A stretch of DNA of 64,000 bases from Epithemia pelagica (lineage: Eukaryota; Protista; Bacillariophyta): assembly GCA_946965045.2 (NCBI GenBank), contig OX337233.1, forward strand, positions 3,162,001 to 3,226,000, written 5' to 3'. Position 1 is the stretch's first letter; every line of letters begins with the position of its first letter. Positions 1 to 64,000 of the stretch are shown piece by piece. Under the pieces are notes generated by a model, which was given only the letters and a program-made list of their open reading frames with translations, was not told the DNA's origin and did not search any database. The translations under genes were made by a program, and so were the position numbers.

Positions 1-1
1 G

Positions 2-943
2 AAGGGCAAGTTTGTCGTGCCCCTCGAACAGTCTCACACCGCGTCCGAGCAACTCTACAGCATTAGTCCCTTGACACCCGTGGAAAAGTTGGAATATGCT
101 TTGGACATGGCGCAAGCCTTGGCCTTGTTACACAACAACGAGTTTGGTGTCATTGTGCACGATGATTTGAAGTTGGATCAATTCCTGATTGCCCAACCAT
201 CTTCTTCTCCTGCAAGCACCACCACCCACGGCCGTAGAAGCAGTGGTCCTCGCGTGAAATTAAATGATTTCAATCGTGGCGAAGCCATGATGTACGACTA
301 CCAACATGGCGAATACTGCAAATACCGAAATGGTCGTGGCCGTGGACCGGTACGTTGCATCCTCTGGATCGAATCTGCACTTTTGTGCTGGTTGTGTGTG
401 CGTGTGTGCATGTTTCGACAAGAACTCTCACACCTTGCCTTCTTGTTTCGTTTCTCAGGCGCGATCGCCCGAAGAGTATTTTGACCATCCCCTTGATGAA
501 AAGATTGATATTTACAGCTTGGGTAACACTTTTGTACGTTGTGTCATCATATACGTAGAGACCTCAGGTGTTGGCGGTGGACCCACGTTTCGTTCTCTCT
601 CTCACACATGGTTGTTCTTGTTTTTGGTTGGTTTCGTTCCATGTCGTTGTTGTTGCTGCTGCTGCCAAACCCACAGTTTTCCATCTTGACGGGAGAACAC
701 GTCTTTCCCAATTCGTGCGATACCAGACAGGTTCAAAAGCGCATCAAGGAGGGGGAACGAAGCTTTTTGGATCCCCGATGGACCACGAATGCATCTCATG
801 CCGAAGGTCAATTGGTCCATATCATTCAAAAATGTTGGGAAGCCAATCCGGAGGATCGATATGCAATTCAAGACATTATTGTCATTCTCCAACAAGCTCT
901 GGAACAGCAATTGTACCTGGATCAGCAGAAGAATGCCGTCTAG
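2..943 (+). CDS. Atypical protein-kinase-fold protein, 3' part (5'-truncated by window); exons 2-349, 459-533, 677-943
   Basis: Spliced reading gives HDDLKLDQFL (catalytic loop), KLNDFN (DFG equivalent), RSPEEY, DEKIDIYSLGN, ILTG..F and CWEANPEDR (subdomain XI). GT-AG introns 350-458 and 534-676 join the motifs in phase 0. Confidence 0.85.
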
Positions 944-1756
944 GAAGTTGTCCAAACGAATTTCCATCTTGTTGTAAAACCAGCTCTGCTTATAAAACAG
1001 GACAAGGTCCGAATCGAACCTCGTCTTCTCTCGCACAAGCGCTCGAAACACAATTGCAATTGTTGGATCCAAACATTATTCGCTAGCTATAATTACCATT
1101 TGTACCATCATCATGCATGTTGGCGAGGAGTCTCGCACACACCCAATCTCGTAGCAGTGCGTTCTTTACCTCGTTTGTATGCAGGGGAGACTCATTTTCT
1201 TCCTCACTCGCCAGTCCATCATCCACCATTGAGCATCATTGGCTGTGGTTCAAGTTCTATAGGCGATGGGTCTCCTTGCACCAGCCAACGGGTGTGTGAG
1301 CGTCCTTGTGTTTCGTCTCTTGCATATAAGTTTCGATGAGGTATTTTTTTGGTCGAGTGAAAAGGGTGATCGGGCGCTGACGTTGCGGGTGCGGAGGCTT
1401 AAATAGTCTTGCATTACATGTAATCTTGATCCCGCAGGCAATAACAGTTTTTTGTTGGTGCTTTTTATGATGATGTTACGTTGTGCCCCCAAACAGAAAC
1501 CTTTTGGGGATTTACCGCATGTCCGTCGGTCGCCCGTCATACGATACCATGCCATCACTGTCGCTGTCGCGGCACGATTCTTTGCCCCACTTCTGTCGTC
1601 ACTTCTTCTTTGTGGTGTTCGCTCTTTGTGCATCTCCAGATTCTCAAGACAACAACAGAAAAGAACCAGGCCGTTTTTGTACAAAGGCATTTGGTCTCAA
1701 CTCAAAGTTTCGTTGTCCTCTCGAGGTCTTGATCGAGCGGTGTGCAGGATACGAGC

Positions 1757-2515
1757 ATGTCCAAGTTGTACAAGGGCCCCCAAGGCGATGCCGATGCTTT
1801 GTCACCGGCCTCCAAACCACCCTCGGAAACCGTGCCACCAACGGAAAAGCCAGCAGCAGTGCAAGACTCCAATGTCTTGTCTACCAGCGCCGTCTATGTC
1901 GAGGAAGAACAACTGTCGGGCTTTTTTCGTGGCATTTCGGTGGCGACTCGCAAATTCGTCATGGCGGGCAAAAAGGTCATGGCCGCCAAGGCTCCCGCCT
2001 TGAAATCGGCCGTGCGCGAAATTGGTCAAATTCGACCCCTGGCCTTTGCCAGTGAAGGTGCCGTGGCCGGTGCCTCCATTTTGCCTCGGTCCATTTACTA
2101 CGGCGCCTGGGGCTTGAGTGGCATTGCCATTGCCTCGGACATTTATACCAAACAAGACGATGCCGCGGCGCAGGGAAAATCGTGGGAAACGGCCGTGTAT
2201 TGGACCGCCTTTCATATACCAGCCAGCTTGGTCGTACCGGCCTATATCATTCATCAAATTGTCCACAAGGTCCAACATGCGGTCGACAATCCCAAGGGCT
2301 TTGCCAAACAGTGGTCGCCACGCCTCAAATCCTGGACGCCCGTGGGAGCCGCCTTGTTGAGTATCATTCCAGTCGTGCCGGTTGTGGATACAGCCTTTGA
2401 ATATGCCATGGAACCAACCCTGGGGGCACATTTGGGATTGGAGTTTGAACATCACCACCATGAGGGACCGCACGATCCACACACCAAGACGACGACGACT
2501 GCCGCCCACTCATAG
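1757..2515 (+). CDS. MTFP1: Mitochondrial fission process protein 1 (MTP18)-like, copy 1
   Basis: RPLAFASEG...ASDIYTK...IPASLVVPAYIIHQIV...WTPVGAALLSIIPVVPVVDTAFE parallels the MTP18 pattern (RYxGYANE / D..dK / LASV.IPg..I / l..IP.i..piD). First ATG at 1757. Confidence 0.7.
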   Translation: MSKLYKGPQGDADALSPASKPPSETVPPTEKPAAVQDSNVLSTSAVYVEEEQLSGFFRGISVATRKFVMAGKKVMAAKAPALKSAVREIGQIRPLAFASEGAVAGASILPRSIYYGAWGLSGIAIASDIYTKQDDAAAQGKSWETAVYWTAFHIPASLVVPAYIIHQIVHKVQHAVDNPKGFAKQWSPRLKSWTPVGAALLSIIPVVPVVDTAFEYAMEPTLGAHLGLEFEHHHHEGPHDPHTKTTTTAAHS

Positions 2516-10659: not shown

Positions 10660-12460
10660 ATGTTACCTCGCAGCAAGCATGCATGGTCTCGATCGACGGT
10701 TGCTTCCTCCTCTCCATCTCGTCGACAACAGCTGCTGCAGCAAGGTCGCCGTGTTGTTCCAAAGAATGCTTCCAGCCATGCCTCGACTGGAAAAGTCAAG
10801 GTGATCCGACTTATTCAGAGTGTTGCGGTCGTACTCATTGTTTTGGCCTTTGCTGTTTGGATCTGGTTGGCGGTTTCCTTTTCTCAAGTCTCCTCGTCCA
10901 CGGTTGTAGACCTTGGTGTCGCACATTCCAATGCTGGTGGCAGCAGGAGCAAAACGGGTTGGACCCATGCCATTCGCCGCAACTGCACGGTCAGCACCAT
11001 TCCAGATTTTACCACGCGATTAACGGAACGACCCTGCAAACCCATTGTTGTCGCCTATGCCGTTTCTCTCATCAAGGTAAGCCCTCCAGTTGGATGTGCA
11101 GTGAAGGTTCTACACACCATGTCTTATACTCTCCTCCTGCATGCATCGCATGATAATAATCCTCCATTACTAAGATTAGTGTGGTGACTTTCAGTCGACA
11201 CCCGAAGGCTTGGTGGATGCGGCCTTGGTGATGCGGCATTCGATTCATCATACCAGTTCCCGGGTGGGTGCTTCGGACTATGACTACAAAATGTATGCCA
11301 TTGTCCATGCCGATGCTCAACCCTGTAGTCATATTCTCCAAGATGCTGGCTTTCACGTGTTGGTGCGACAACGACCCGTAGAACAAAGGGATATTCGAGG
11401 CTCCGTCTTGCGTGAGACGATTCACAAGGAATGGTGCTGTGGTCATGATGAATTCATCAAGCTGTATGCGTATACACTACCGGAACCAGTAGTGGTACAT
11501 GTGGATATTGACTTTGTCTTTCACAAACCAATGGATCATGTCTTTGATGCCTTGTTGTATCATAAGGACTCGGACATTGGAAGGGCCGCCCGGCAATCGA
11601 TTGAACTGGAACGGTCGACCGATGCTTGGCCCGATGAGCCGCAAGCATTCATGACTCGCGATTGGGGACAAGTCTATCCTGGACGACTGGCCGGTTTTCA
11701 AGCGGGCTTTATTGTTCTTCGATCGAATCCCAAAGTAATGGATGAACTGGTGGAAATCATCAAGGAAGGGCACTATGTCGATGGTTTCGGTCGCGACAAT
11801 GGGTGGGGTGGAAAAGGGTATGGTGGCTTTGTCGGTGCCAAGGCCATGCAAGGATTGATCGCGTACTATTACGATGTGGTGGCACCACATACGTGGGTAG
11901 AGTTGAATCAATGCCGATACAATCACATGGGCATGGATGTACGGTTCAACCCCGGTGGACCAGGGTATCGTCCCAAACACAAGGGGAAATGTCGGAATGG
12001 ACAAAACGACTGCGAAGATTGCATGCATACCAACGCGACGCGGTTGGTTTACAACATTCACTACACCCAATGTCGCAAACCGTGGATGTGTATTGGAGTG
12101 GGGGATTCCACACTCCAGGGCAAACGCAAAGTCACGCGCGACGAAAAGAATCTCATCCCACAAGGAAACGTTCATATCGAACACTGCTTTGAACTATTAC
12201 AGATTTGGCACACGTTTCGGACTCGATTGGAAGACGAACTGAACCGAACAATCCTCGAATCCCACCACCACAGCAGCAATGGGAGTGCAATGGAATCGAT
12301 CGTACCTGTCATTGAGAAAGCCCGACGTGGTTCCTTTAAGACAAGCGTGTTTCAAGGCCATTGCTTGCAGAATGGCGAGTACCTTCAATTGGCAGCGGGA
12401 CATAAGCAAACGCTTCGACGGATATCACAACTCTACGAGCAAGGAAGGTCGGATGAGTAG
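10660..12460 (+). CDS. GT8-like glycosyltransferase family A, copy 1; exons 10660-11076, 11180-12460
   Basis: N-terminal TM anchor; EFIKLYAY, VVHVDID (DxD), FQAGFIV, QGLIAYYY, IHYTQCRKPW (GT8 His/KPW). Intron 11077-11179 is at the same position (SLIK|C) as in the paralogs. Confidence 0.8.
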
Positions 12461-12851: not shown

Positions 12852-14408
12852 CTAATGCCCCTTCCACCTGCATTGATGCAACTGGCGCATGTGGGACGAT
12901 GAAAGGCGATGACAAAAATGGGCATGCTGATCGCAATAGGCGTCACCCGGACTGCTCTTGTTCTCACCAACACTGCGGAATGACACGTTGGACGATCGCT
13001 CTAGAATGTAATTGTAATCATTCGAGTTGCGGCATTGGCCTAAATGTCGAGCAGCAACCCCACGCAAAGGCCGCATGAGGGGTAAATATTGAGAATGATT
13101 GTATCCCTCCAAGCGATCGTGCAGAACCTTGGACACATTTGTCTTGTAAACAGATGGGAGTTTTGGTGAATTGCCATGACTTGAATGTCTTGCCATGTGA
13201 TAGTAATTGACCAAGTATCCCCACACCCAATCACTATGCAAACAAAACGACCTGTTGCCCCATTGTTTGACTTGTAAATACGGAGCGGCAACAGAATATT
13301 GATACATCATGTCCAACAAACTCATGCCCTGACGATATACCTCTCGTTCGCCAATGAGGTTTTTTTGCAGTCTCCAACACACCAATGCCTCAAAGTCATC
13401 GTGCTTGGAGAAAGGTGACCGCGATTCTCGAGGATCGGGATATGTCGTATCACTAGCAGAACAATCAAAGGGACGCAACAGATGAACCAAGGTGGAGCGA
13501 GTCAATACCAGACCGAAGCCACCAAACGGTAAGGTGATGAAATGATTCTTATCTGGCACAGACCGTATTAAGCACCCGGCAACAGCGCGAGGCTGGTTCG
13601 ATGGATACAGTTGAGGTAACGTTGATTTCAACGCATCAATGTTGATCCATGTGTCATCGTCGCCCAAAATAAGGTAGTCTGGAAGCAAAGATATATTCAG
13701 ATTCAATGAAGCCGAGAAATCTGCCGAGCTTTGGAGTTGTAGTCTATCTTGCTTGGATGCCGTCTCACTGTTGCGATTGTAGTATTTATGAGCAAAGTTT
13801 CGCAAAGCATTGAGGGGTCGTTTCTGAGCACAGATCCAGCCGGAAGGATTTCTCAGGAGCGGAGCAAAGTCCAGGGTGGCGAACATGTATCGGAGTCTTC
13901 GTAAGACCGGATACGGATGCTTCGAACGGCAACGCTGGACGATTGCTTGCACATGATCCCATGTCAATTGCTTGTAACAATCTTGTTCGACATCGTCGAC
14001 TTCCGTGGCGGCATAAAAATGACGGACATTTTTGCCAAAGGTTTCGTATTGTGCTTGTTGCAAGTCGGCTTGTGTGACACTCCCAATGCTGACCACATCA
14101 ATGATGACGGGTGAAGACGTGGAGAGTTTTGGGTTCTTTGTCTTTGTTGTCGTTTTGTTGTTAAAGGTGGGACTACGGTGGTAGTGTCGCTTCAAGATCC
14201 ACAGATTGGAGAGGTCATCATCACGAGGCAACGAGGGAAGAAGAGCATTCATCACCAACTGGTTCGTCAGCAAAAACAGAAAAACCATTCCCCAGAACAG
14301 CCGAAGGATCATGGGACATTGGGAATGGTTGTAATGGCGGACCATCACTCTGTTGCTTGTTTTTGAAGGAGCGGAAGAGGAATCACCACTTTCTCCTGGT
14401 ACGCCCAT
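12852..14408 (-). CDS. Fringe/GT31-like glycosyltransferase copy 1
   Basis: TM anchor; LPDYLILGDDDTWIN, PFGGFGLVLTR and HSDWVWGY parallel Fringe DDDxYVN / GGAGxxxSR / DDxxxG. First in-frame ATG at 14408. Confidence 0.7.
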   Translation of the reverse strand: MGVPGESGDSSSAPSKTSNRVMVRHYNHSQCPMILRLFWGMVFLFLLTNQLVMNALLPSLPRDDDLSNLWILKRHYHRSPTFNNKTTTKTKNPKLSTSSPVIIDVVSIGSVTQADLQQAQYETFGKNVRHFYAATEVDDVEQDCYKQLTWDHVQAIVQRCRSKHPYPVLRRLRYMFATLDFAPLLRNPSGWICAQKRPLNALRNFAHKYYNRNSETASKQDRLQLQSSADFSASLNLNISLLPDYLILGDDDTWINIDALKSTLPQLYPSNQPRAVAGCLIRSVPDKNHFITLPFGGFGLVLTRSTLVHLLRPFDCSASDTTYPDPRESRSPFSKHDDFEALVCWRLQKNLIGEREVYRQGMSLLDMMYQYSVAAPYLQVKQWGNRSFCLHSDWVWGYLVNYYHMARHSSHGNSPKLPSVYKTNVSKVLHDRLEGYNHSQYLPLMRPLRGVAARHLGQCRNSNDYNYILERSSNVSFRSVGENKSSPGDAYCDQHAHFCHRLSSSHMRQLHQCRWKGH

Positions 14409-14712: not shown

Positions 14713-14791
14713 TCCAGCTGTCAAGATGCCATTTTCGACATCCCTTGCAGATCCAGCTGTCAAGATGCCATTTTCGACATCCCTTGCAGAT
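14713..14791. repeat. Perfect 39-bp tandem duplication spanning the stop codon of GT31-like copy 2
   Basis: TCCAGCTGTCAAGATGCCATTTTCGACATCCCTTGCAGA at 14713 and 14752. Confidence 0.95.
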
Positions 14792-16391
14792 GCAATTCAT
14801 GCAAGTGGCGCATATGTGTCGGTGAAATACGATGACAGAAGTGGGCATGTCGATCGCAATAAACATCGCCTGGACTGCTCTGGTTTCCACCATCACTCAG
14901 TGTCAGGTTGATGGCCCCCTTTTCACTGTCGTCATTGTAATCATTCGAGTTACGGCATTGGCCTAAATACCGAGAAGTTATCCGAGCATTGGGCCGTGGC
15001 AATGTCAAAAACTGAGAGTGATTGTAGCCTTCCATGCGATCGTGCAGCACCGAGCCGACCGTTTTGAAATTTCCCGGGAGTTTGGGTGAAGTGCCATGAC
15101 TGGAATGCCTCGCCATGTGATAATAATTGATCAAGTATCCCCACACCCAGTCACTGTGCAAACAAAAGGACTTGCTTCCCCATTGTTCCACTTGTAAGTA
15201 TGGAGCGGCCACAGAATATTGATACATCATATCCAACAGACTCATGCCCTGACGATAAACGTCTCGTTCGCCTATAAGGTTTTGCTGCAGTCTCCAACAC
15301 ACCAGTGCCTCAAAGTCATCGTGCTTGGAGAAGGGAGGCGTCGATTCGATAGGAGGGTCGTAATGGTTGGTGTTGTTGAAGGTGCAATCAATCGGACGCA
15401 ACAGATGAACCAAGGTGGAGCGAGTCAACACGAGACCAAACCCCCCAAACGGCAGGGTGAAATAATCCACAGCCAAGGGCTTGAACCGTACGAGGCATCC
15501 AGCGATAGCTCGTGGTTCCCGAGAGGGATACAGTTTGGGCAACGATGATTTTAACGCATCAATGTTGATCCATGTGTCATCGTCCCCCAAAATTAGGTAG
15601 TCTGGTAGCAAAGATGCATTAAAACGTAGTGAGGAGGATGAGTGTTGTTGTTGTATTGCCGCTGTTTTCGACCTTTTCTCGTTGTTGTGATAATAGTATT
15701 TACGGACGGCGTTTGTCAGGGCATTAAGAGGCCGTTTCTGTGCACAGATCCAGCCAGAGGGATTCTTTTCGAATGCAGGCATTTTGAAATAGGCATAGTT
15801 GTATCCGAGTTTGATTAAAAGCGCGTGTGATCCGAGTTTGGAATGACAACGCCTGAGGATGTACATAACTTGATATGATGTCAGTCGCTTGTGGCAATCT
15901 TGTTCGACATCGTCGGCTTCGGTGGCGGCATAAAAGTGTCGGACACGTTTCCCAAAGGTCTCGTTTTGTGCCGTTTGCAAGTCGGGTCTCGTGACACTCC
16001 CAATACTGATAAAATCAATGACAACCCCAGTGGATGAAGCAACTGGTGGAGGTTCATTCGTCGATGTTTCGTCCACAACTTTATTGTCTTGTAAGGCGGA
16101 TAAAATTGTTTGTGAATGTTCCATGGACGACGTGACAAAAGTACTGGTATGAACCTGGACGTATCCCTTCAGTTGGAACATGAGCACAAGAAGAATCCCC
16201 AGTCTCCATTGCCACCGGATTTCGAGTCTCAGGAGTAGTGACATGTTGAATGGTTGCCAAGCGCCATGATTATTGCTTGAGTTCACCATCGTGTATCTCG
16301 TATGGCGCATATGGTTCAAGGATCTGAGAACAAAATAAGGACATCGATGACTATGACTGGACCCTAACACTATTGCCGCGAGTGGCCCCAT
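14760..16391 (-). CDS. Fringe/GT31-like glycosyltransferase copy 2
   Basis: Same motifs as copy 1; intact 543-aa ORF. Confidence 0.7.
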   Translation of the reverse strand: MGPLAAIVLGSSHSHRCPYFVLRSLNHMRHTRYTMVNSSNNHGAWQPFNMSLLLRLEIRWQWRLGILLVLMFQLKGYVQVHTSTFVTSSMEHSQTILSALQDNKVVDETSTNEPPPVASSTGVVIDFISIGSVTRPDLQTAQNETFGKRVRHFYAATEADDVEQDCHKRLTSYQVMYILRRCHSKLGSHALLIKLGYNYAYFKMPAFEKNPSGWICAQKRPLNALTNAVRKYYYHNNEKRSKTAAIQQQHSSSSLRFNASLLPDYLILGDDDTWINIDALKSSLPKLYPSREPRAIAGCLVRFKPLAVDYFTLPFGGFGLVLTRSTLVHLLRPIDCTFNNTNHYDPPIESTPPFSKHDDFEALVCWRLQQNLIGERDVYRQGMSLLDMMYQYSVAAPYLQVEQWGSKSFCLHSDWVWGYLINYYHMARHSSHGTSPKLPGNFKTVGSVLHDRMEGYNHSQFLTLPRPNARITSRYLGQCRNSNDYNDDSEKGAINLTLSDGGNQSSPGDVYCDRHAHFCHRISPTHMRHLHELHLQGMSKMAS

Positions 16392-16848: not shown

Positions 16849-18296
16849 TTATTTCTGTAAGGAATGCAAGGAATGCAAATGGCGCATATGAGATGGTGAA
16901 ATGCGATGACAAAAATGGGCATGCTCATCACAATAGGCGTCACCCGGACTGCTATTTGCCGCAACATCAAGTTTCTGCCGGTTGAGCATGTGATTGTAAT
17001 CATTCGAGTTTTGGCATTGGCCTAAATATCGAGCAGATAGACAAGGATGTTTCTTCATCATGCGAAAATATTGAGAGTGATTGTAGCCTTCCATGCGGTT
17101 GTGCAGCACCGAGTGAAGCGAACTGAAATATCCTGGGAGTGACGGTGCATTGTTACGTTTGGAATGCCTTGCCATGTGGTAGTAGTTGATCAAGTATCCC
17201 CAAACCCAGTCGCTGTGGAAGCAAAAGGATCTATTACCCCAATGATCCACTTGTAGATACGGAGCGGCGATAGAATATTGATACATCATATTCAACAGAC
17301 TCACTCCCTGACGATAAACAGCTCGTTCTCCAATGAGGTTTTGCTGCAGTCTCCAACAGACCAACGCCTCAAAGTCATCTTTCTTGGAAAAAGGTGGCCA
17401 AGCTTCGGGAGGCCTCGTTGCGTGGTTTGTGTCCAACGGGCAATCAATGGGACGTTTTAGATTCAACAAAGTGGATCGAGTCAATACCAGACCAAAGCCA
17501 CCAAAAGGGAGGGAAAAATAATCATACTCAAGGGGCTGAAATCGTACTAAACATCCCGCAATAGCTCGAGCCTGGTGCGATGGATACAGTTTAGGCAACA
17601 TTGATTTCAAACCATGAATGTTAATCCACGTGTCATCATCCACCAAAATAAGGTAGTCTGGAAGCAAGGATGCGTTCAACCGGACTGACGAGGAGCTATA
17701 TGATGATTGTTGCGGACGGAGATCCACTGACTGCATTGGTGGCTGCTCATTGTTCTGATAGTAGTATTTATGCACTGCGTTCGTCAAAGCATTGAGCGGA
17801 CGTTTCTGTGCACAGATCCAGCCGGCAGGGTGTTTCCTGTTTTTAAACCAGTGTAGGAGGGCAAACTTTGGCCCAAGTATGTTGATAAGCGAATACTGAT
17901 TCTCGGAATGACAATGCTTGATAATGCTTTGTAGCTGCTCCCATGTCAATTGCTTGTAACAATCTTGTTCGACATCGTCAGCTTCGGTGGCGGCATAAAA
18001 ATGACGGACACTTTGCCCAAACGTCTCTTTTTGAGCCTCTTGTAGGAGACCTTTTGTGACACTCCCAACGCTGACAAAATCAATAACCACCCCATCAGGC
18101 GTCGTTGTGACAGTTGGACCTTGTGTTTCTTATCCAGGACATTTTTGGGGACGTCGAAGGTAGGCAAAGAAGAGGGTTCCACGTTGGGCGTTTGGAATAA
18201 AATACTCTTTTGCAGGAAAATGTAGCCACTTAAATGGGAAAGGGCACCAAGAAGAAAAAAGGTGGTTATCCAGTTCCATCTTCTTTTGAGCATCAT
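16849..18296 (-). pseudogene. Fringe/GT31-like copy 3 with apparent 1-nt frameshift near 18131
   Basis: The TM-anchor frame (MMLKRRWNWITTFFLLG, ATG 18296) differs from the catalytic frame, which has TAA at 18130-18132. One extra base restores LDKETQGPTV...VVIDF. May be an assembly error. Confidence 0.6.
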
Positions 18297-19592
18297 TCCT
18301 CCTAACCATGGTAACTCTGTGGTACGGACCATTGTCGTGTTGTCTTCGACGATTTGTGGCTTTGTGGCTGGACCCGACTTGGGCGCATTGTCCCAACACG
18401 AAGCGGCATCTTTTTAATGGAAACTTGAAACTTGTGACTGCACGAAAATGCTTTGGGTGTGCCCAGTCGCACGGGTACGGGGGTACACGCCCCCTTTTAG
18501 ATATATACTCTACTACTTGTTTCTTGTCTGTCGTGCGTACGTCGTGACGCGGCAGGAGTTCGGGAGCAGATGTTCGGACATTATATGGACGAGCACGCGC
18601 AGCGCGCGCACGCGGCCACGGCCAGCGCGCAACTTTGGTTGGAGCTGGATGTGAGAACATCAGCATCAGAGTCGAGCTCACAATCTTGGGATAGTGAGCA
18701 GAGACACGATCACTGCCGTCTCAAGTGGAGATCATCAGACTAGATAGTTCTAAGGATTCAAAAACTAGCCCCATACCCGCCCTTGGGAGCCATCTTGGTT
18801 CCGGGGCCTTTACGGCACACGCGTCTACTCCTAGCGTGCATGAACTTCTATGTGTGAGACCTGCACGACGACAGAGCGCCACGACAGCTGCAGGATGTGG
18901 TCGCTGGGTCATCCCCTCGAGATCGACGACTATGGAAGGCCTCTTCATCCTGCTCATAGGTTCCTCTTGGGCATCGGGGATACCTGCTCTGTGTTCCAAT
19001 GTCCGTTACACGTTCTCTACGCCATGTGCTAATCCTACCAACAATTAATAGGAGACCATTATATTTTGTTTCGGGAGCAGACGAGTCTATCACAACAAGC
19101 AGGGGGAACATAGGATCGTGTCTTTGTGCCAAACCCATCACGGGAGCTTGGCGATGTGCCCTATATTGGATGTTTGCTGTCATTCACGCTCTTTGCAGGG
19201 AGGATTTTCAAGTGTCCAAAAGTTTTATACTGCAACGGGCAAGAAGGGAAACAGCACTGGCATGGATAAAACTGGATATGCAATCTCTCTTGTCCGGTTC
19301 GACGAGCAATGGGTTGAATGTCATAGACTGTCGGGGATTCTCGAACCTCTAGGTAGCTCTCTCGAGTCGACCAGGTAGATTTGCCGATCTTCGGATTCCC
19401 ACATAGGAATGGTCGTACTTGCGATATTCGAGCGTCTTGGTCGTGACCCTTGTGGCCAACGTGGGTCGTTCCGATAAAGTTTTCTGTCTACCATCATCCC
19501 AGTGCCGGATAGAGTGTGAGGTGTGGTAGGCACGGCACTGCGTTCACAACATGTTCTGTTGTAATAGGTCATACTATATTCAATAAACCTTG

Positions 19593-39860: not shown

Positions 39861-40025
39861 CAGTAAACAAAGACCGTGAGACTCCCAAGCAGGAGGGAGT
39901 CGCACATGAGTCGAACTCGCGATGGGTCATTCTCTGTCTTTCATTTCGCATATGTTGGCGTTTCTTGGTCATGGCTTCCTTCGTTCCCCATCCTTTTGTC
40001 GTCGTCCTCCTCCTCTTCTTGGACC

Positions 40026-41964: not shown

Positions 41965-42157
41965 TACTAGAATCCACTCGAACCACGCCGGTGGATGCGT
42001 TGCTTGGGCCGCCGTGTGGGAGGAACCGTTGGAAAAAAGTATCCAATTCTACACTCTACACGAGTTTCGAAACAATCACATGAATCTATATCGGATACGA
42101 TTCACCTTGTTCTAACACATGTATACTATTCGTCACGGGGGGTTCTTTCTCACGTTT

Positions 42158-45100: not shown

Positions 45101-48100
45101 CCCTGTTGAACATCGACCCACTCCTCTTGCCCGGCGAATCGTTGATGAATCAATCCAACAGTGCGATCCAAGTCTTCGGGTTCGACAAGCAACGTGAACT
45201 GTAGGGAGGAACCATGCCCTGTCTTCAGTTGAAGTGGGGATCCACTGGCAGCAACATCGCCCTTTCGCATAATAACGACTGTATCTGCAAGCAAGTCGGC
45301 TTCTTCCATGGCGTGTGTAGTCTTGTGCACATAAAGGACGAAAGCAAAAGAGATTGCATGTGAGAAAAATAGAGACAAAGACTCCAGGGATCATATGGGA
45401 ACGTACCAGCAGTACAACCCTGCCTTCTTTAATACTATCGATATGCTTCCAAACAAAACGACGCGAAACTGGATCCATCCCAGTTGTTGGCTCGTCCAAA
45501 ACAATAAATGGCCTTTCTCCAATTGTCTGTCGTTGAGCCAGAAAAAATGAAATACTTGAGCTCTGCTATCATCACGTTGTATAGAAGCACACGAAGGACC
45601 AACTTGCAACACTTACCGAACAAGCCACTGACAGACGCCTCTTCATTCCTCCCGAGAATCCTGAACTATATCCGTCTTGAACGAGGTCAAGATCTACACT
45701 TTCCAGCCATTTTTGTACCATGCTATCGAGATCCGCATCCGCAACCCCACGGAGCCCTGCATAGAGTTCGAGGTGCTCCCGCGCGGAAAGCTTGGGGTAC
45801 AAATAGTCATCCTGCTTACATACACCAATGAGCTGACGAACACTGTACTTGTCCTTCGAGGCAGAAAGCCCAAAGATGGAAGCGGATCCTTCGCTTGGTT
45901 CGGTCTCGCAAAAAAGCATATGGGACAGCGTTGTTTTCCCGGCACCGTTATGTCCTGTTGCATCATCGGAATAGCATCATTTTGAGGTGAGTGATCGCGT
46001 TATCAGACAGCGTGGTTGACTTCTAATTTCAGTTTGCTTACTGAGCAAGGCTGTGACTTCTCCCACAGCCAGAGAAACATCCACACAATTTACGGCATGA
46101 TTGTCTCCGTAACGTTTCGTTATAGAGGCTGTGGAAACTCCCGTTTCACCTTGAGATACCGCGTCTCGAATGGGCCTTGCCCCGCCAAACCACTAACGGC
46201 GAAGGAAAGGAAAGTACAGAGGCTGAGGAGCTCCATTCTGTAAAGAACAAACAAGGGAACAAACAACGACGAATCAAAATAAGAGGCGACTTTGTCGAAA
46301 CGAACGAGCCGTCGGATCAATCGCGTCACCCGTCCGATAGAACTTACCCCTCTGGGGAAAACTTGAATCCAATAAGCCGCGAGGCACGTGTACAGCGTCG
46401 AAAATGCAAGCAAGGTAGCAATCATTGCGCTATTGGAAGTTGATTCTGTTTCTTCAGACCCTTGGCATAAGAAAAGGCCTTCGCAAAACGCTTCGGACAA
46501 ATTTGCTGCCGGACAATTGGTGTACGAAATTTCTTCCACTGGATCCCACTCGGAACTAACCTCGAAAGTACGTACAGTGGTTCCTTGCTCATACAACGAG
46601 GTACCTTGGGCGTTTTCGGGGTCCAAAGGATCAATCGATCGACGAGCTAAAGTTTCGGCACTCATGGACATGTGCTTGAAGCCGAATTCGCGGTCTGGCA
46701 TCCCCGTGTAGCCCAAAAAGTTTCCCCACATGAGTAGAAAAGGTGTGTAAGGGATAGCGGCCAACGCAAACTTGGTGATTCCTTTTTCCTGGATAGAACG
46801 GAAAAGAGAAAGGGAAGAGCACATTGAGTTGGTCAAAAAGAAGCAGATGATGATCGGACACTGTCGAGAACTTACCTTGATAGACACGTAGCTTCCAAAT
46901 CCGGTGGCGAAGTAACATCCCAGAATGTATTCATCGGATGGGACTTCCAGGCGTTCCTCGGGCGTCTTTAGATTCTTGGCCTCGGAGAATGACATGAGCG
47001 GCTGGTCACATGTTTGGCGTTCCAATCCAACAAAAGTTCCATTGTCAAACTCACGACGGACAAAAGCATATGACTACGGACAGACAGAACATTTGAACAA
47101 TAATAATGAGTTGATACGGAACGCGCTCTGAAAGAACACTCAAATCGTTCCGGAACTTACCGTATTGCGGTTGACCCAGAATATTCCCACTGGTGTGCTG
47201 AGATAAGGGCGATTGACAACACCGGCATCGTAGGGAATGTCACTCTTGTTTACAACGACGATGAAGGGGCCCCATGGCGCAACGAGCATGATCATGATAA
47301 AAAGGGCCGCAAGTGATCGTGCGCCACCTGCCACTGCAACGAGGAGAAAGGAACATCCCACCAAGCCAATGTTGAGGAACAAAATCGAAACGAACAAAGG
47401 ACCAAATGATGTGGATTTGAAAACGTGGACATCATCAATGAGCTTGGCCGTCATTGCTCCCAACATTGCATTGACTGTGGAAATGAGAAGAAAGGGTATC
47501 CACCAGCTTGCCCAAAAGACACTTTCTCTCACACCCAGAGTTCGAAGCACTCCGAGCATTTTGGTCTCAATCTCTGGCTGTACAAAGAGATAGGCACAAA
47601 TTGCCAAAACCATTGGGCCCAAGGCTGTGAACAAGATCAAGAGGAGACATGCGATCAGAACGCGGTTGCAAACTTTCACCCACCACCTCATTTCCAAATC
47701 CACTTACCCACAACGGTGACATTGAATCCATCACGCCACGAATCATTGTAGGACATGGGAGTCTTGTCGTCCCAATCCCTTTCCAGGAAGTTTCCTTCTT
47801 CATCGTAGCGTTGAGACTCGTAGTACTCCCAAGTGACTGCTCCACACTCATCCAAGGGAATTTCGGAGAAATTTCCCACTTCACTGCCTCCCTCGTGAGT
47901 TCCCCAAGAAAGCAAAACGGAAATGATCGAACTCATTGTCTGTTTTGTGACAAAACTGTGAGAGACGATGATAAAAGCAGAGGAACACTTTTTGCCGCTT
48001 CGATAGAACACACACACGTACCATAACCGTAAGAAGAATGGGGCGTCGTGTCATCAAGAGGTAGTTTTTGCGAAGGACAAACGAGAGCTGCCGCAACCAT

Positions 48101-48282
48101 GGAACCACAGGGATCTCAATGGTGGTGCGCGACTCAGAATCCTCGTCCACAGGCACCGCTCCCGAGGCGGCATCCATCTTGGAATTCTCGTCCTCTTCCA
48201 ATGCCGTGGACGTATGTTTCACTGGCATCGATGGTGGTGGAGGATTCCCTTCCTCCTCGACAACTGGTGCTGGTTCCATCAT
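42158..48282 (-). pseudogene. Full-size ABCA-family transporter copy 2 (11 exons), in-frame TAG at 46193-46195 and Walker A Gly to Arg
   Basis: Intron positions match copy 1. Exon 6 reads LRR*WFGG versus LSRYWFGG in copy 1. Split codon A|GA gives RHNGAGKTT versus GHNGAGKTT. Confidence 0.75.
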
Positions 48283-55667: not shown

Positions 55668-56180
55668 GTCGTCCTGTCGTGGTGCTAATAACGGGGAGGA
55701 CTCGTCCTCTGAATCGTTGAATCTCTCTCTGGCTCTGGAATAAGAGAGAGAGATGCTGTGGGATTGGTTTTGTTTTTTGGTGTAGAGTTTCTTGGCAGGA
55801 ACAGACGCAATTTTGTGGTGTCAACGCTCCAATCGTTGCCCGGCTTGTTCGTTTGGTCTTGGGCGGTAAAGGACAGTTAAGTTGGTCCCGATCCTACCCA
55901 TGGATCTGTGATGGGATGGTGAAAGGGGGTCGCCTTTTCCCCGATCCGCCAAGCACAAAACCATGACGACGACGCGCACAGAGAATGAATGACCCCTGCG
56001 CTCATTGATCTAGGTATATACTATATACCAGAGAGGACCCAGAAGAGAGAGAGAGAAACGAGTGTCGCCAGGAGAAACCAACCATCCTTGCTGTCCGGCT
56101 GGAACCCAGAATTCGATACGTTATATCCAGAGAGAGAGACAGCGCGAAACAAGAATCGACAGACAGAGAGGGGCGCCACC

Positions 56181-58429
56181 ATGAGTATCCGGTCGGGTCG
56201 TTCCACCGGTTCCGGTCAAACGGACGAAACCTCCAAGCACCAGGCCTTGGATTCGGCCCTCTATCGTCGTCGTCGCCGTCCCGGCCAGGCCGAGATTGTG
56301 GGTGGTGGTGATGGTAATGGAGTAGAGTCCCCCGAAGAAATTCGAGCAAATGACAAGGAAGTGAGCAGTCGTTCGTGTGGACGTTCCAATCGTCGTCGTT
56401 CTTCGGTCGTGGCCATGATTCAATTGAGCAGTGTCCTTCTGGTCTTGGGAGTCGCTCTAGCGGCACGCTATCAACGAACCATTCATCATATGCAACACGA
56501 ACAAGAGCTCTTGGTGCAACAACAACAACCACACTCGGCCATTCCTGGTGGTGTTGCAACCACCACAGTAGCCTCGAGGCAGAGCAACGCCACGACCAAA
56601 TTCTCTTCCTCCGTGTCGTCGTCGTCCATGTCGTCCCCCGCTTGTCGTCAAAAAGACGTCCCGATTACCAATCACACGATTCGGTTGTACGAACGACCCT
56701 GCCAACCCATTCCAGTGGCCTATGCCATTTCTCTCATCAAGGTATGTACGTACGGACGTACGTAGGTCGGTGTTTGTCATGTCTGTTTGTCGTCGTTGTG
56801 GAGTGGTCGATTTGGAACTATACAGAGAGAGAGAGGGTCTGTGATGCTTGTCTCGTGGGGTACATGCGTTGTGCATGGTTCGAATGTTATCTTGTGATGG
56901 TGGTGGCGGTTCTTTGTTTGCGGTTCTCACAAACACACACAAAAGGGACCCCTGTATGGATACTGGAGTGATGTCTGGTAGTGGTGGTGGTGTTTCTCTC
57001 GTTTTATGTTGTTGTTTCACACTTGCCTGTTTTGCGTTTGCTGCCCCACTGATTCCTTCGTATACATTCTCTCTGTCTCTCTCTCTCTTTCTATACTATA
57101 CTATACTAGTGCGGCAATTACCAATCGACGCCCGAGGGGTTGGTCGATGCCGCTCTGGTCTTGCATCATTCCGTTCATCAACAATTCCGGTCGTCCTCCA
57201 GGATGCACCAGTATTACGACTATAAAATGTATGCCTTGGTTCATCCGCAAGCCGTCCCGTGCAGTTCCCTCTTGCAAGAGGCGGGCTTTACCGTCGTCGT
57301 GCAGTCGCCACCCCTTGAGAAATCCGACATTCGGGGTGACTTTTTGCGACAAACCATTCACAAGGAAGTCTGTTGCGGACACGATGAATTCATCAAATTA
57401 TACGCCTATACATTGCCCGAACCCATTGTCGTTCATGTCGATTTGGACTTTATTTTTCATCAACCCATGATGCATGTCTTGGATGCCCTCTTGTATCACA
57501 AGGATTCCGCCATTGGTCAAGAGGCTCGTCGCCAAATTGAACGGGAACGACCCACGGATCCATGGCCGGACGAACCCCAAGCCTTTTGGACGCGCGATTG
57601 GCCGCAAGTGTATCCGGGACGGGTGGCGGCCTACCAAGCCGGTTTCATGGTCCTCCGTCCCAATCCGCAAGTCTTGCACGACATGGTGGAACTTGTCAAG
57701 GAGGGCCATTACGTGGCCGGTCATGGACGGGACAATGGATGGGGCGGCAAGGGCTATGGTGGCTTTGTCGGCGCCAAGGCCATGCAAGGCTTGGTGGCCT
57801 ATTATTACGATCAATTTGCCCCCGATACTTGGGTCGAACTCAATCAATGCCGATTCAATCACATGGGCATTGATACCAAATTCCGTCCCGGTGGATTTGG
57901 CTACAAGGGTTCGGAACATGGCAAGTGTCGCAATCGACAAGACACGTGCGAAGACTGTCAATCCACGAATACCAGTCAGATTTATAGCATTCATTTTACC
58001 AAATGTCGCAAGCCGTGGAATTGCATTGGACAAGGCGATTCCAGTATTCCCCACGAGGCATCGGCCGACGTCAAAAAGGCCTTGCGCAAAACCTTGATCC
58101 CCGAACAATTGATACCCCTTCCCCATTGTTTGGACTTGTTGCAAATTTGGCATTCCGTACGATCCGATTTGGAACACCAATTGCACCACTTGATTCAACA
58201 AACACCCTCCTCCATCCATGTCGATACCACCAACCATAACAACAACGACAACAACAACATGGGCAAGAACCAAACCTTTGCCTTGGATCATGCGCGACGT
58301 GGCTCGTATCGGCCCTCGTATTTTCAGGGCCATTGTTTGGCCAATGGAAAGTACTTGGCCTTGGCCAATGGAGACAAAGAGACCTTGCAACGAATTCCGG
58401 AACTGTACCGCAAACCAAAGCCGGTATGA
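56181..58429 (+). CDS. GT8-like family A, copy 3; exons 56181-56741, 57110-58429
   Basis: TM anchor; same motifs (VHVDLD) and same intron position (56742-57109). Confidence 0.8.
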
Positions 58430-59151: not shown

Positions 59152-60567
59152 ATGGCAACACCTCGGAGACTCAAAACCCAATGGCTATGGAGCCTGGGCT
59201 GTCTCATTCTGGTCGTGTTGCGATTGAAGGAATACGTTCAAGTGCATTCGAGTTCGTTTATCACTTCATCAATAGATTTCTCTTATTTGTCCACCATACC
59301 ACCCTTCAACCAGACCGACCAACGATCGACTGATGAACCGCAAACAGTTTCTCGTTCGACTGAAATTGTAATCGATTTTGTCAGTATTGGCAGTGTCACA
59401 CAATCCGATTTGCAACTGGCACAAAAAGAGACCTTTGGCCAAGGTGTCCGACATTTTTATGCGGCCACCGAAGCCGACGATGTCGAACAAGATTGCCACA
59501 AGCGACTGACATGGCATCAAGTTCGTCAAGTTATCAGTCATTGCCATTACAAACTCCAATCACACCCGCTTTTGATGAAACTCGGAACCCTCTATATTTA
59601 TTTCCGAATATTCAAAGTCAAGAACAATCCCTCCGGCTGGATCTGTGCACAAAAACGACCACTCAATGCCCTGCATAATGCAGTACACAAATACTATTCC
59701 CACAGCAATGAGACGCTCTCGAATAGAGATCAGATCAATCAACAGTTACCAGACTACTTGATTATCGGGGACGACGACACATGGATCAACATTGATGCGT
59801 TGAAATCAAGCTTGCCCAAAATGTATCCTCCCAACGAACCTCGAGCTGTGGCAGGATGTCTTATTCGATTTGAGCCCCGGTATGATTATTTTACCACACC
59901 GTTTGGTGGGTTTGGTCTGGTTCTGACCCGCTCCACCTTGTACAATCTGCTGCGTCCCATTGATTGTTCCTTCCAAGATACAAACCATGCTGATCCACCA
60001 GAGGAATCGAGACCACCCTTCTCCAAGGGCAGCGACTTTGAGGCTCTGGTTTGTTGGAGACTGGAACAAAATCTCATTGGAGAGCAAGCGGTATATCGTC
60101 AGGGCATGAGTTTACTGGATATGATGTATGAATACTCTGTTGCCGCTGCCTATCTACAAGTCGAACAATGGGGGAATAGGTCGTTTTGTTTGCATAGTGA
60201 TTGGGTTTGGGGGTACTTGATCAACTTTTATCACATGGCGAGACATTCAAGTCATGGCAGTCCGCCAGAACTCCCAGGAGGCTTCCAAACGGTCGGGTCG
60301 GTGCTGCACGATCGCATGGAAGGCTACAATCACTCTCAAAAACTGGCAAATGACAGGGTTGCTGCTCGATATTTGGGCCAATGCGGTAACTCGAATGATT
60401 ACAATCGCATTCTAAAGCGGCCGTCATCCAAGCCATCTTTGATCGTTCCGGGTCAGAACAAGAGCAGTCCAGGCGATGTTTATTGTGATGAGCATGCTCA
60501 TTTTTGCCATCGTATTTCACCGTCCCATATGCGTCATTTGCATGAACTGCATTCGCAAGAAAAGTAA
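59152..60567 (+). CDS. Fringe/GT31-like glycosyltransferase copy 5
   Basis: Intact 471-aa ORF with the family motifs. Confidence 0.7.
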   Translation: MATPRRLKTQWLWSLGCLILVVLRLKEYVQVHSSSFITSSIDFSYLSTIPPFNQTDQRSTDEPQTVSRSTEIVIDFVSIGSVTQSDLQLAQKETFGQGVRHFYAATEADDVEQDCHKRLTWHQVRQVISHCHYKLQSHPLLMKLGTLYIYFRIFKVKNNPSGWICAQKRPLNALHNAVHKYYSHSNETLSNRDQINQQLPDYLIIGDDDTWINIDALKSSLPKMYPPNEPRAVAGCLIRFEPRYDYFTTPFGGFGLVLTRSTLYNLLRPIDCSFQDTNHADPPEESRPPFSKGSDFEALVCWRLEQNLIGEQAVYRQGMSLLDMMYEYSVAAAYLQVEQWGNRSFCLHSDWVWGYLINFYHMARHSSHGSPPELPGGFQTVGSVLHDRMEGYNHSQKLANDRVAARYLGQCGNSNDYNRILKRPSSKPSLIVPGQNKSSPGDVYCDEHAHFCHRISPSHMRHLHELHSQEK

Positions 60568-61320: not shown

Positions 61321-61597
61321 GATAAGGAATAGAAAAATATGGCGTTGATGCTTGAGAGAAATGTCGAGAGAGTATTGAACGAACCCTTTGCCATGGTGGC
61401 TGGAAACCACACCTATGGGGCTTGGAACTACCTACCGGCAGGAAAGCGGGAGGACATAGATCAAATATAGATCGCTGAAAGGTCGCGTTGAGGCCTTATA
61501 AAGCGCCCAACGCGATCTTTTTCTTTCTGGGGACTTTCCTCATCTTTTGTCTACTGCAGCAATCATTTTCATTTGGTGCTCCACAACCAGTCTAAAG

Positions 61598-63097
61598 ATG
61601 ATGACAATACTCCAGAGATTCAATGTCCAATGGATATGGAGACTGGGTTGTCTTCTTTTCGTCATGTTGCAATTGAATGATTTGGTCAAAATACATTCGA
61701 GTGATACTTCTATCACTTCTTGGTCGTCCATCGAACTCTCCCTCTTGTCCAACGCTGCCATACAACAAGACCCATCACTACACAACCAGGGCAACACGGA
61801 TCACAATCAATCCATTTCTGTTTCCAATGAGGTTGTCATCGATGAATCAGTTTCGTCTTCCTCTGAAATTGTAATCGATTTTGTCAGTATTGGCTCGATC
61901 AAGAAACGAGACTTGCGCGAGGCCCAGAAAGCAACCTTTGGGAAAAGTGTCCGAAACTTACATGCTGCCACGGAAGTCCACGATGATGTCGAACGATACT
62001 GTTACCGACGCTTGAAACCGCATCAAGTTAGTCACATTGTCAGGCGCTGTCATAATTACAAAAATGGAACATATCATCTTTTAAGAAGACTTGGATATAA
62101 ATATGCCGATGCCGGATTGAGGAGCTTTGCAAAGAATCCCGCCGGCCGGATCTGTGCCCAAAAACGACCTCTCAATGCGCTGCATAATGCAGTACAAAAA
62201 TACTATTATCACAAGAATTCGACGCTCTTGAATAGAGACCAGACCAATCAACTTCGCTCACCCGGATCATCCTCTTCCCTCCGTTTGGATGTTTCGTTGT
62301 TACCAGATTACTTGATTATCGGGGACGATGATACATGGATCCATATTGGTGCGTTGAAATCAAGCTTGCCCAAAATGTATCCTCCCAACGAACCTCGAGC
62401 TGTTGCAGGATGCCTCATTCGATTTGAGCCCCGTTATGCTTATTTTACCATTCCTTTCGGTGGGTTTGGTCTGGTTCTGACCCGTTCCACCTTGTTCAAT
62501 CTCTTGCGTCCCATTGATTGTTTCTTCCAAGATACAAAGCATACTGAGCGTCCTGTCGAATCGAGGCCACCTTTCTCCAAAGACAGCGACTTTGACGCCC
62601 TGGTTTGTTGGAGACTGGAACAAAATCTCATTGGTGAACGAGAGGTTTTTCGTCGGGGCATGAGTTTGCTGGATATGATGTATGAATACTCTGTTGCCGC
62701 ACCCTATTTACAAGTCGAACAATGGGGGAATAATTCGTTTTGTTGGCACAGTGACTGGGTTTGGGGGTACTTGATCAACTACTATCACATGGCGAGACAT
62801 TCAAGTCTCAACAATTCACCAGAACTCCCGGGAAAGTTCAACAAGGTTGGGTCAACTTTGCTCCATGATCGCATGGAAGGCTACAATCATTCCCAATATT
62901 TGCCAGTGCTTTTTGGGCCAATGCCTCAACTCGAATGACTACAGTTTCGATAGAGAGGGATCAACCAACTTAACGGTGAGCAATGGTGGGAAGAAGAGCA
63001 GTCTCGGCGACGCCTATTGTGATGAGCATGCCCATTTTTGTCATCGTATTTCAGCTTCCCATATCACTACTTGCATCAATTGCATCAACAAATGTAG
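61598..63097 (+). pseudogene. Fringe/GT31-like copy 6 with frameshifted C-terminus
   Basis: The main ORF stops at 62938 after a deletion/frameshift near 62909. The homologous LGQCLNSNDY...GDAYCDEHAHFCHRIS continues in another frame, with a second shift near 63063. Confidence 0.65.
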
Positions 63098-63238
63098 CAT
63101 GAACACCATAAAGTTTGGAAGTATGCGGGTTGGTAGTTTCGAGCAATACGGTATTGAACGAAACTATTCAGATCTAAATTTCTTTTATCTCTATGGACTA
63201 TTCTGGTCTATCAGTGAGCATGTATCCTTCATATCTTG

Positions 63239-64000
63239 CTATTGAAGAAGTTCGGGTGCAACAAGTTCGTTGCTCTTCTCGATGGGATCCGACCAGGCGA
63301 CGACGACACGACGGCCTTGATCAAACGTTGGTTGTCTGCCATGGGCGGTACGAAAGTTGTCAATCAAAACCAAATCACCCTTTTGCCAACGATTCAATAC
63401 CATATTCTTGTGGACGGCACGACGGATTTCCTGCACTTCTCCCAAAGAAAAGGGAGTTCCATCGCCAAACGAAATGTCCAGACCCATGCGCTGTCCCAAC
63501 AATCCATATTGAATCACGGATTTGATGGAAATGTAAATGGCACGCAGCAAGAACCGGACATCTCTTGTCAGGGAAAAGGAATAGAACAATTCGGCAGGAA
63601 AGCTCGTCCAGTGAAAGACTTGTGCATGATTGAACCAGATAGGATCTTTGGTTTCGGGATGCAACTGAAAGGGCTCTGCCGTGTATTCACTCACAAAGGT
63701 ATCATTGTTGCGCCCTTCCCATCGAACGGGCATGTTCTCTCGTTGTGCAATTTCTTCGACTTGTCGCTTGTTTGTTGTCCCAAAGACCTCGGGCCAGGAT
63801 TTCATGGCTGCCACATCGTGTGTGAAACGAGCGCCCCGTTTATGATGCGTTCGGCGGTATTGAATCTTTTTGGTGGCCAATTTCTGGCGAAGTTGAGGGG
63901 AAATATCGAGAAAGACTTGACGGAAATCACTCAATGCCGTTTCCCCACCCAATGCCTTGGGAGCTTTCAAGGCACTAAAAAAGACGTTTTTGGGAAGCGA
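63239..64000 (-). CDS. TauD/TfdA (clavaminate-synthase-like) Fe(II)/2-oxoglutarate dioxygenase, 5'-truncated by window
   Basis: PKNVFF...GGETALSDFR, WFNHAQ, FGDGTPF, WQKGDLVLIDNFRTAHGRQP; frame open to the window end. Confidence 0.85.
   Translation of the reverse strand, partial: SLPKNVFFSALKAPKALGGETALSDFRQVFLDISPQLRQKLATKKIQYRRTHHKRGARFTHDVAAMKSWPEVFGTTNKRQVEEIAQRENMPVRWEGRNNDTFVSEYTAEPFQLHPETKDPIWFNHAQVFHWTSFPAELFYSFSLTRDVRFLLRAIYISIKSVIQYGLLGQRMGLDISFGDGTPFSLGEVQEIRRAVHKNMVLNRWQKGDLVLIDNFRTAHGRQPTFDQGRRVVVAWSDPIEKSNELVAPELLQ

Follow-up and report, generated by a model that had tools for sequence, protein, structure and literature searches.

A 64,000-nucleotide stretch of the genome of the diatom Epithemia pelagica (contig OX337233.1, positions 3,162,001 to 3,226,000; the whole stretch is referred to here as the window) harbours 11 glycosyltransferase (GT) genes of three subfamilies. 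Six are GT31/Fringe-like (family A, genes A1 to A6), three belong to a divergent GT8 subfamily (family B, B1 to B3) and two, with three domains between them, to a second GT8 subfamily (family C, C1 and C2). The explanation that we prefer, and to which we give slightly better than an even chance, is a lineage-specific island, built by duplication, of cooperating Golgi GTs that would make a secreted diatom glycan. The island of three diatom GT subfamilies, the natural fusion of families C and B in other diatoms and a pseudo-domain in C2 are new, while GT tandem arrays and bifunctional GTs are already known kinds. A literature search found no paper describing family A, B or C or the island.

The window has a GC content of 43-52%, contains no N and is dense in long open reading frames (ORFs), part of them interrupted by short GT..AG introns. 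Paralog families were defined by all-vs-all blastp of the stop-to-stop ORFs, and for the spliced B and C genes each exon served as a separate query. This comparison recovered all of the GT counts of a first-pass annotation (three 'GT8-A' genes, two 'GT8-B' genes with three domains and six GT31-like genes), and profiles and predicted folds backed its GT31-like and GT8-like family calls. Its description of three unrelated GT families was right as to three subfamilies, but B and C are both of GT8 type, leaving two CAZy-type folds. GTs make up about 11 of the approximately 24 genes of the window. The GT share of eukaryotic gene sets is usually quoted at about 1%, and the share in the window is far above this norm, but copies within a family are duplicates and not independent events. 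GT31-like and GT8-like genes are interleaved, so that genes for non-homologous enzymes lie next to each other. Named relatives of the most characteristic proteins of the window were from diatoms (Epithemia clementina, Fistulifera solaris, Seminavis robusta, Amphora, Mayamaea, Phaeodactylum, Thalassiosira, Corethron and Chaetoceros), and one further named relative was from a dinoflagellate with a diatom endosymbiont. The window copies clustered with raphid pennate diatom sequences in the trees. The window is thus part of a raphid pennate chromosome, of neither human nor prokaryotic origin.

Family B gave zero Pfam matches, even at E<=10. A profile of 39 homologs matched the PDB only at E=0.11 (Gat1, 6mw5), though exactly on the DxD strand. 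The AlphaFold2 (AF2) model of B2 exon 2, computed from the alignment of these homologs, had a pLDDT of 93.7 and a pTM of 0.92, and all 49 Foldseek matches to the PDB at E<=0.001 were GT8 structures, the best being glycogenin (6eql, E=4.4e-6, TM-score on the target 0.64). WbbM, XXYLT1, Gat1 and the GT8 domain of LARGE1 were further fold matches. HVD(I/L)DF was present in the three B copies, and H-[YF]-[TN]-x-C-R-K-P-W was the most conserved stretch of the family. By its predicted fold and its HVDIDF and HYTxCRKPW motifs, family B is a divergent GT8 family. Exon 1 of the B genes encodes a strong hydrophobic anchor and ends in A-Y-A-x-S-L-I-K followed by GT, and exon 2 opens after AG with C-G-D/N-F/Y-Q-S (SLIK/GT..AG/CGDFQS at the junction of B1). 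The homolog alignment, with transcript-derived (MMETSP) proteins among its members, confirmed the splice junction, as its consensus reads through uninterrupted.

Long antisense ORFs (238-495 amino acids, aa) run across all three B genes (Table 1), and they are also kept among the B paralogs and in some of the metagenomic loci described below (L041, L044, L047, L063 and L079). They were rejected as genes, as they have no family match and the sense strand encodes the GT8 fold. Most likely they just mirror the conserved sense frame, and they can mislead ORF-based annotation.

Every catalytic domain of family C is split by a phase-1 intron after HSDQ/G. The following exon resumes with L-M-Y-Y-W, and the consensus of the C homologs reads straight across the intron site. 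The window exons scored 21.9 and 22.4 bits against Pfam PF01501 (cut-off 24.3; E=1.5e-4 for C1). PF01501 and/or PF11051 occurs in many C homologs, and GT8 is the name given to the P. tricornutum relative. The profile built from 31 homologs matched glycogenin in the PDB (E=7.7e-9), and the FLDADI and HF.G..KPW motifs were present in C1 and in domain 2 of C2. Judged from the profile match, the PF01501 domains of the homologs and the motifs, family C is a GT8 family. Domain 1 of C2 has DAA instead of DxD and has lost the His of H..G..KPW, and is therefore probably non-catalytic; it is probably a catalytically dead pseudo-glycosyltransferase domain, retained ahead of the intact domain 2.

The six A copies showed pairwise amino acid identities of 45-68% and shared approximately 150 invariant positions, including D-D-D-T-W. 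In the alignment, D270-D271-D272 did not vary among the six window copies or 41 homologs, and DDD-T-W was kept even in the two broken copies, A3 and A6. The window copies had no direct Pfam match, and the Fringe domain PF02434 was carried by four remote homologs. A profile of 41 sequences was compared with the PDB, and the five matches listed were all GT31 enzymes (among them B3GLCT, E=0.0016, and C1GALT1, E=0.0073, as well as CHSY3 and Manic Fringe). The AF2 model of A2 had a pLDDT of 79, and its ten best Foldseek matches were all GT31 structures (including C1GalT1, 2.8e-5, B3GalT5, CHSY3, B3GalT6 and B3GNT2), with Manic Fringe at rank 15. On these profile and model matches we accept family A as GT31-like, with the caveat that the TM-scores of the model to GT31 structures were low (0.34-0.43), owing to the far greater size of the diatom domain. 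Named relatives of family A came only from diatoms or from a diatom-bearing dinoflagellate. Three homologs from other diatoms (P0034, P0041 and P0055; 630-810 aa) have a second GT domain, either PF13524 (CgeB-like GT-B) or PF04577 (GT61-type), and the GT31-like family therefore also occurs in multi-domain GT proteins.

Next, we analysed the surroundings of family B in other diatoms. A scan of metagenome contigs with the family B profile gave 80 loci, which were then searched with all window proteins. Family C lay directly upstream of B on the same strand in 12 of the approximately 33 loci with enough upstream sequence; in one further locus C and B were tail to tail, and the end of a C domain was visible in two short loci. 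A single uninterrupted ORF of 877-1052 aa encodes C and B in at least 10 metagenomic diatom loci, in the order transmembrane (TM) segment, GT8-C, GT8-B. Of the eight fusions tested, six had an N-terminal half with a PF01501 score above the cut-off. The C-type motifs (DxD and H..G..KPW) were found in 10/10 fusion ORFs and the B-type motifs, by simple pattern search, in 9/10 (H..CRKPW) and 6/10 (H.D.D[FY]). A clear N-terminal TM segment was present in seven of the eight fusion ORFs that were not cut by a contig end. In the tree, the fused B domains grouped with a Corethron sequence in a single clade, distinct from the clade of stand-alone raphid pennate sequences that contains B1-B3. Comparison of the B and C profiles with hhalign re-found only C-domain extensions inside the B alignment and was uninformative on homology between the B and C domains. 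In the window, C2 and B3 are divergently transcribed, with 0.3-0.5 kb between their likely start codons. Because they are naturally fused in other diatoms (Rosetta-stone evidence), B and C would act together. Family C was the only recurrent neighbour of B in the 80 loci; within 10 kb of B, none of these loci contained a relative of the ABCA, kinase, RING-CUE, TauD or Crinkler genes of the window. The idea of deriving a shared function from the neighbours of B in other diatoms was dropped, as nothing recurred except C.

Family A adjoins family B twice in the window (B1 next to A1-A4, and B3 next to A5-A6). The same two families meet in Epithemia clementina, where ACA910_001066 is the ortholog of B1 (96% branch support) and ACA910_001069 is sister to all window A copies (support 94). 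The two genes are on one contig and three locus tags apart, as judged from the locus-tag numbers only. This pair suggests an ancestral A-B pair, with family A expanded later in the lineage of the window. The linkage in relatives that would be expected of the cluster proposed in the first-pass annotation was thus found for C and B (fused or adjacent in 12-13 loci) and, only tentatively through the locus tags of E. clementina, for A and B, but it had no support for the ABCA, kinase, E3 and TauD genes.

Within-family duplicates account for 8/11 GT genes, and most of the GT gene count stems, by sequence comparison, from old duplications. The GT paralogs are 45-70% identical at the amino acid level, yet they kept all of the family-invariant residues, and the split between B1 and B2/B3 is older in the tree than the split from E. 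clementina. As the duplications are old and the copies conserved, the genes were retained and are not merely recent copies. The contig of the window carries one more family A gene, the seventh (P0004, with 80% identity to A5), outside the window, and the A array therefore extends past the window coordinates. A second contig set (contigs of 487,552 and 818,861 bp, with P0001, P0002, P0003, P0006 and P0076) carries copies 92-99% identical to A2, A5, A6 and B3. Given this identity to the window genes, these two contigs were rejected as independent evidence of A-B linkage; from their sequence they are a haplotig, a homeolog or a re-assembly of the window region.

Two of the A copies are decaying. 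The catalytic ORF of A3 has no in-frame ATG before residue 132, and A3 is a probable frameshift pseudogene or assembly error. The frameshift in A6 severs the conserved Cys/His-rich C-terminus, which is readable in another frame (62775-63242). The counterpart of A6 on the near-identical second contig (P0006, at 92% the most diverged pair between the two contig sets) also has a broken C-terminus, but a differently broken one, which speaks for real decay of A6 rather than a sequencing error. The first-pass annotation had noticed the out-of-frame anchor of A3 but counted one frameshifted GT31 copy, whereas A6 is broken as well; its proposal of evolution by birth and death agrees with the old paralogs and the two decaying A copies.

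Strong N-terminal hydrophobic anchors were found in six of the 11 GT genes (B1-3, C1, A1 and A4; Kyte-Doolittle, KD, values of 1.7-2.8). In the same scan the anchors of the other five (A2, A3, A5, A6 and C2) were just weak, so that the TM anchor previously ascribed to every GT holds firmly for the former genes but not for the latter. Many Cys residues are invariant in families A and B, a hint of lumenal location. Anchors and cysteines are consistent with Golgi-type, type II, lumenal, Cys-rich proteins.

Families B and C share the GT-A fold, the DxD and the C-terminal His...KPW with known GT8 enzymes (glycogenin, XXYLT1/GXYLT, Gat1 and the plant GAUT/GUX proteins). Family B departs from the GT8 norm by approximately 170 extra residues and ten-odd conserved cysteines, and the named relatives of both families are all from diatoms. 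Family A shares the DDD after a hydrophobic strand, the following G-G-x-G and the N-terminal anchor and stem with GT31 enzymes (C1GALT1, B3GLCT, B3GALT5/6, B3GNT2, the GT31 domain of chondroitin synthase and Fringe), but it differs from them in its larger catalytic region (~420 aa) and its conserved Cys/His-rich C-terminal extension. The C-B fusions resemble LARGE1 (GT8 + GT49) and Klebsiella WbbM (a GT8-type and a second domain), which are type II or membrane-associated proteins with two GT-A domains per chain, one of them GT8. Like these, the fusions have a TM segment followed by two GT domains, with both sets of metal-binding motifs; unlike them, both diatom domains are GT8-type and presumably retaining, and in the window they are encoded by separate, divergently transcribed genes. 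Sequence identity to LARGE1 and WbbM is just 12-13%. Both were among the fold matches of family B, and the likeness is one of architecture. In eukaryotic gene clusters, such as those of fungal galactosaminogalactan or plant specialised metabolism, non-homologous enzyme genes of one pathway are adjacent. By contrast, most members of the diatom island are paralogs, and linkage is conserved only for C and B (as a fusion) and, tentatively, for A and B.

The other genes of the window are physical neighbours of the GTs and look like bystanders; this applies to the ABCA pair, the RING-CUE E3, the kinase, the TauD gene, the MTP18 pair, the Crinkler-N-like ORFs and the 1282-aa ORF (Table 1). Both ABC genes are, by their sequence, full-size ABCA transporters, as first annotated. 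Pfam placed two ABC_tran domains in each and gave ABCA-1 a weak R1_ABCA1 match, and the PDB matches were led by ABCA3 (1.5e-63) and ABCA7, ABCA1 and ABCA4 (approximately 1e-51 to 1e-54), the next class being ABCB (1e-22). They form an old inverted duplication that encloses B2 and the two Crinkler-N-like ORFs. The RING-CUE protein has a gp78/Hrd1-like architecture (multiple TM segments, RING-H2 and CUE), with the RING match above its cut-off (31.3 bits) and the CUE match below it (18.7 bits, cut-off 21.1); 'ERAD-type (endoplasmic reticulum-associated degradation) E3' fairly describes its architecture. The kinase and TauD-like genes reported earlier are present as well. The kinase-like gene had a weak Pkinase match (E=0.004), and its exon 2-352 matched only generic kinases in the PDB (E>=0.1), on which grounds a POMK-like O-mannose kinase, suggested by analogy with LARGE/B3GALNT2, was dropped. 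The 1282-aa ORF was considered as the 'atypical kinase' of the first-pass annotation and rejected, since it has no kinase motifs and no Pfam match even at E<=10; on visual inspection it resembles a protein of mobile-element or zinc-finger type.

The MTP18 pair, the two Crinkler-N-like ORFs and the 1282-aa ORF were absent from the first-pass annotation. The two MTP18-like genes are 76% identical to each other and have no connection with the GT genes. Both Crinkler-N-like ORFs are intact, with 86% identity over their N-terminal 95 residues and unrelated C-termini, and they scored 23.7 and 24.6 bits against the Crinkler header PF20147 (cut-off 24.6). This modular Crinkler (CRN)-like architecture is seen here in a free-living diatom and not in an oomycete pathogen. 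An oomycete origin of the window, which the Crinkler matches had hinted at, was rejected, since the named relatives of the GT families are diatoms. Between the RING-CUE gene and ABCA-1, approximately 3.4 kb contain no ORF of 200 aa or more (the longest has 190 aa) and no Rfam or tRNA match, an unusual gap in a region that is otherwise so densely filled. No RNA gene came out of the Rfam and tRNA scans of the whole window.

Table 1. Positions and characteristics of the features in the 64-kb window, numbered from its first nucleotide. For C1, C2 and A3, positions joined by an arrow are given in reading direction.
Feature	Position	Strand	Characteristics
Kinase-like gene	2..1083 (cut by window start)	+	HDDLKLDQ and DFN motifs; catalytic loop HDD; DFN replaces DFG
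MTP18-like gene, first	1733-2512	+	PF10558, mitochondrial fission process protein; tandem pair with the next
MTP18-like gene, second	2708-3577	+	PF10558
1282-codon ORF	5651-9496	+	Uninterrupted; Cys/His-rich; Lys-rich tail; no paralog in window
B1	10660..12460	+	Exon 1 10660-11076, intron 11077-11179, exon 2 11180-12460; TM anchor 10819-10875
Antisense ORF across B1	11480-12193	-	
A1	12852..14408 (stop-to-stop ORF 12855-14435)	-	Intact; TM anchor 14253-14309; identical to database ORF P0005
A2	14760..16391 (stop-to-stop ORF 14763-16424)	-	Intact; copy used for the structure model
A3	16849..18413 (catalytic ORF 18129->16852)	-	Anchor-like segment in another frame, 18413->17949
A4	19593..21275 (stop-to-stop ORF 19596-21320)	-	Most divergent A copy, 45-53% identity to the others; strong TM anchor 21108-21164
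RING-H2 + CUE protein	21947..25834	+	1309 codons; six hydrophobic segments before RING (simple KD scan)
ORF-poor interval	~25900-29300		
ABCA-1	29322..35389	+	Multi-exon, full-size; transmembrane domain (TMD) 1; nucleotide-binding domain (NBD) 1 31619-31996; TMD2 + NBD2 32232-34997; R1-like tail 34877-35380
Crinkler-N-like ORF, first	35910-37718	-	602 aa; centre of inverted ABCA duplication
Crinkler-N-like ORF, second	38265-39665	-	466 aa; centre of inverted ABCA duplication
B2	39906..41964	+	Exon 1 to 40391, intron 40392-40674, exon 2 40675-41964; TM anchor 40146-40202
Antisense ORF across B2	40669-41685	-	
ABCA-2	42152..48117	-	Inverted paralog of ABCA-1 (29322-35389(+) vs 48117-42152(-)), ~66% DNA / 62% aa identity
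C1	49317..51199 (51199->49320)	-	One domain, two exons; phase-1 intron ~50082->49886; TM anchor 51071-51127
C2	52094..55667 (55667->52097)	-	Two domains, three exons; domain 1 54576-55667(-) plus start of next exon, ~54421-54190(-); Asn/Ser-rich tail; head to head with B3
B3	55989..58429	+	Exon 1 to 56741, intron 56742-57109, exon 2 57110-58429; TM anchor 56406-56462
Antisense ORF across B3	57401-58885	-	
A5	59152..60567 (stop-to-stop ORF 59068-60564)	+	Intact; identical to P0067
A6	61547..63242 (stop-to-stop ORF 61502-63242)	+	Deletion and frameshift near 62.9 kb
TauD/TfdA-family 2-oxoglutarate dioxygenase	63242..64000 (N-terminus past window end)	-	C-terminal part; PF02668 E=4.3e-20

From the gene content, folds, motifs, C-B fusions and relative duplication ages we infer the following course. 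The island would have grown from a small ancestral neighbourhood, with one A, one B and C alongside, through old duplications, both tandem and segmental. B and C, presumably retaining, alpha-type GT-A enzymes, would act as a pair, a two-site unit with an architecture comparable to LARGE1 or WbbM. Family A, presumably an inverting beta-1,3-type GT-A enzyme, may work on the same acceptor, contributing an additional step or alternative forms of one. The three families would jointly elaborate a secreted glycan in the Golgi, either a wall or mucilage polysaccharide or the O-glycans of secreted glycoproteins. Expansion of the paralogs may diversify linkage or acceptor specificity, with two A copies decaying. 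Diatom wall polymers and extracellular polymeric substances (EPS) are put together within the Golgi and carried out in vesicles (PMC5932028, PMC4584364).

Several observations weigh against such an island of cooperating GTs or speak for proximity without functional meaning, in which arrays of three GT families serving different pathways piled up in a duplication-prone region. We regard this by-product of duplication as a serious alternative, but an unlikely one. Tandem duplication is very common in benthic pennate diatoms, with 4594 tandem genes in Seminavis (PMC7335047); because it is so rampant, with thousands of such duplicates, arrays alone are no argument for function. The high proportion of within-family duplicates among the GT genes and the two broken A copies fit this explanation, and the same region has the inverted ABCA duplication, the MTP18 tandem pair and the two Crinkler-N-like paralogs. 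The neighbours of a lone B or C-B in other diatoms are housekeeping genes (urease accessory proteins, cyclophilin, molybdopterin, tRNA-methyltransferase and serine acetyltransferase genes), and the multi-family cluster is therefore not a general diatom feature, the dense island being lineage-specific. Across the 80 metagenomic loci, no family A gene turned up within 10 kb of B; this absence is weak either way, as nearly all of the loci come from other B clades. In E. clementina, the closeness of A and B can be claimed only tentatively, as it rests on locus-tag numbers, and the best C homolog (ACA910_002959) is on another contig than ACA910_001066 and ACA910_001069. The low TM-scores of the family A model likewise weigh against the island. 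By contrast, C and B are one protein in a whole diatom clade, which is hard to square with unrelated pathways. Adjacency of B and A, twice in the window and again in E. clementina, and the retention of old, conserved copies also argue for cooperation rather than chance.

At the other extreme, the first-pass annotation had united the GTs with the ABCA pair, the kinase, the E3 and the TauD-like enzyme in one biosynthetic cluster making and exporting a polysaccharide, adhesive or glycolipid. ABCA proteins are lipid transporters, which makes a glycolipid route conceivable, and the physical interleaving of these genes within 64 kb is the sole evidence for the full cluster. We consider it very improbable. 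Cooperation of the GTs themselves is plausible, given the C-B fusions and the A-B pair of E. clementina, but the inclusion of the ABCA, kinase, E3 and dioxygenase genes is not supported by any of the 80 loci, where no relative of them flanks B. Moreover, the ABCA pair is a separate, old inverted duplication that merely encloses B2, and the kinase and TauD genes lie at the extreme ends of the window and are both cut by them. Diatom EPS is assembled in the Golgi and leaves via Golgi vesicles and not by ABC export (PMC5932028), so the ABCA exporters have no obvious role.

The island of cooperating Golgi GTs also has a more specific version, which we think rather improbable. The C-B pair would be a LARGE/WbbM-like two-site polymerase. 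It would make the alpha-linked, repeating backbone of a wall or mucilage polymer present across diatoms, and the GT31-like array would decorate this backbone in raphid pennates. The substituted 3-linked mannan (glucuronomannan) that accompanies the silica walls of diatoms is one candidate. Homologs of family C also touch the alpha-1,3-mannosyltransferase model PF11051, and we know of no glucuronomannan synthase from diatoms.

The wall and mucilage polymers of diatoms drive adhesion, gliding, biofilm formation and sediment stabilisation as well as a large marine carbon flux. Two reviews (PMC4584364, PMC5932028) name no enzymes that build diatom wall polysaccharides, mucilage or glycoprotein O-glycans. 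The window provides physically linked candidates, namely two GT8 subfamilies that are kept across named pennate and centric diatoms and are coupled by fusion, and a GT31-like family seen so far just in diatoms and a diatom-bearing dinoflagellate and expanded in the lineage of the window. As family B and the window copies of family A escape Pfam-based annotation, diatom GT counts are probably underestimates. Homologs are present in transformable species, namely P. tricornutum (family C) and T. pseudonana (family B).

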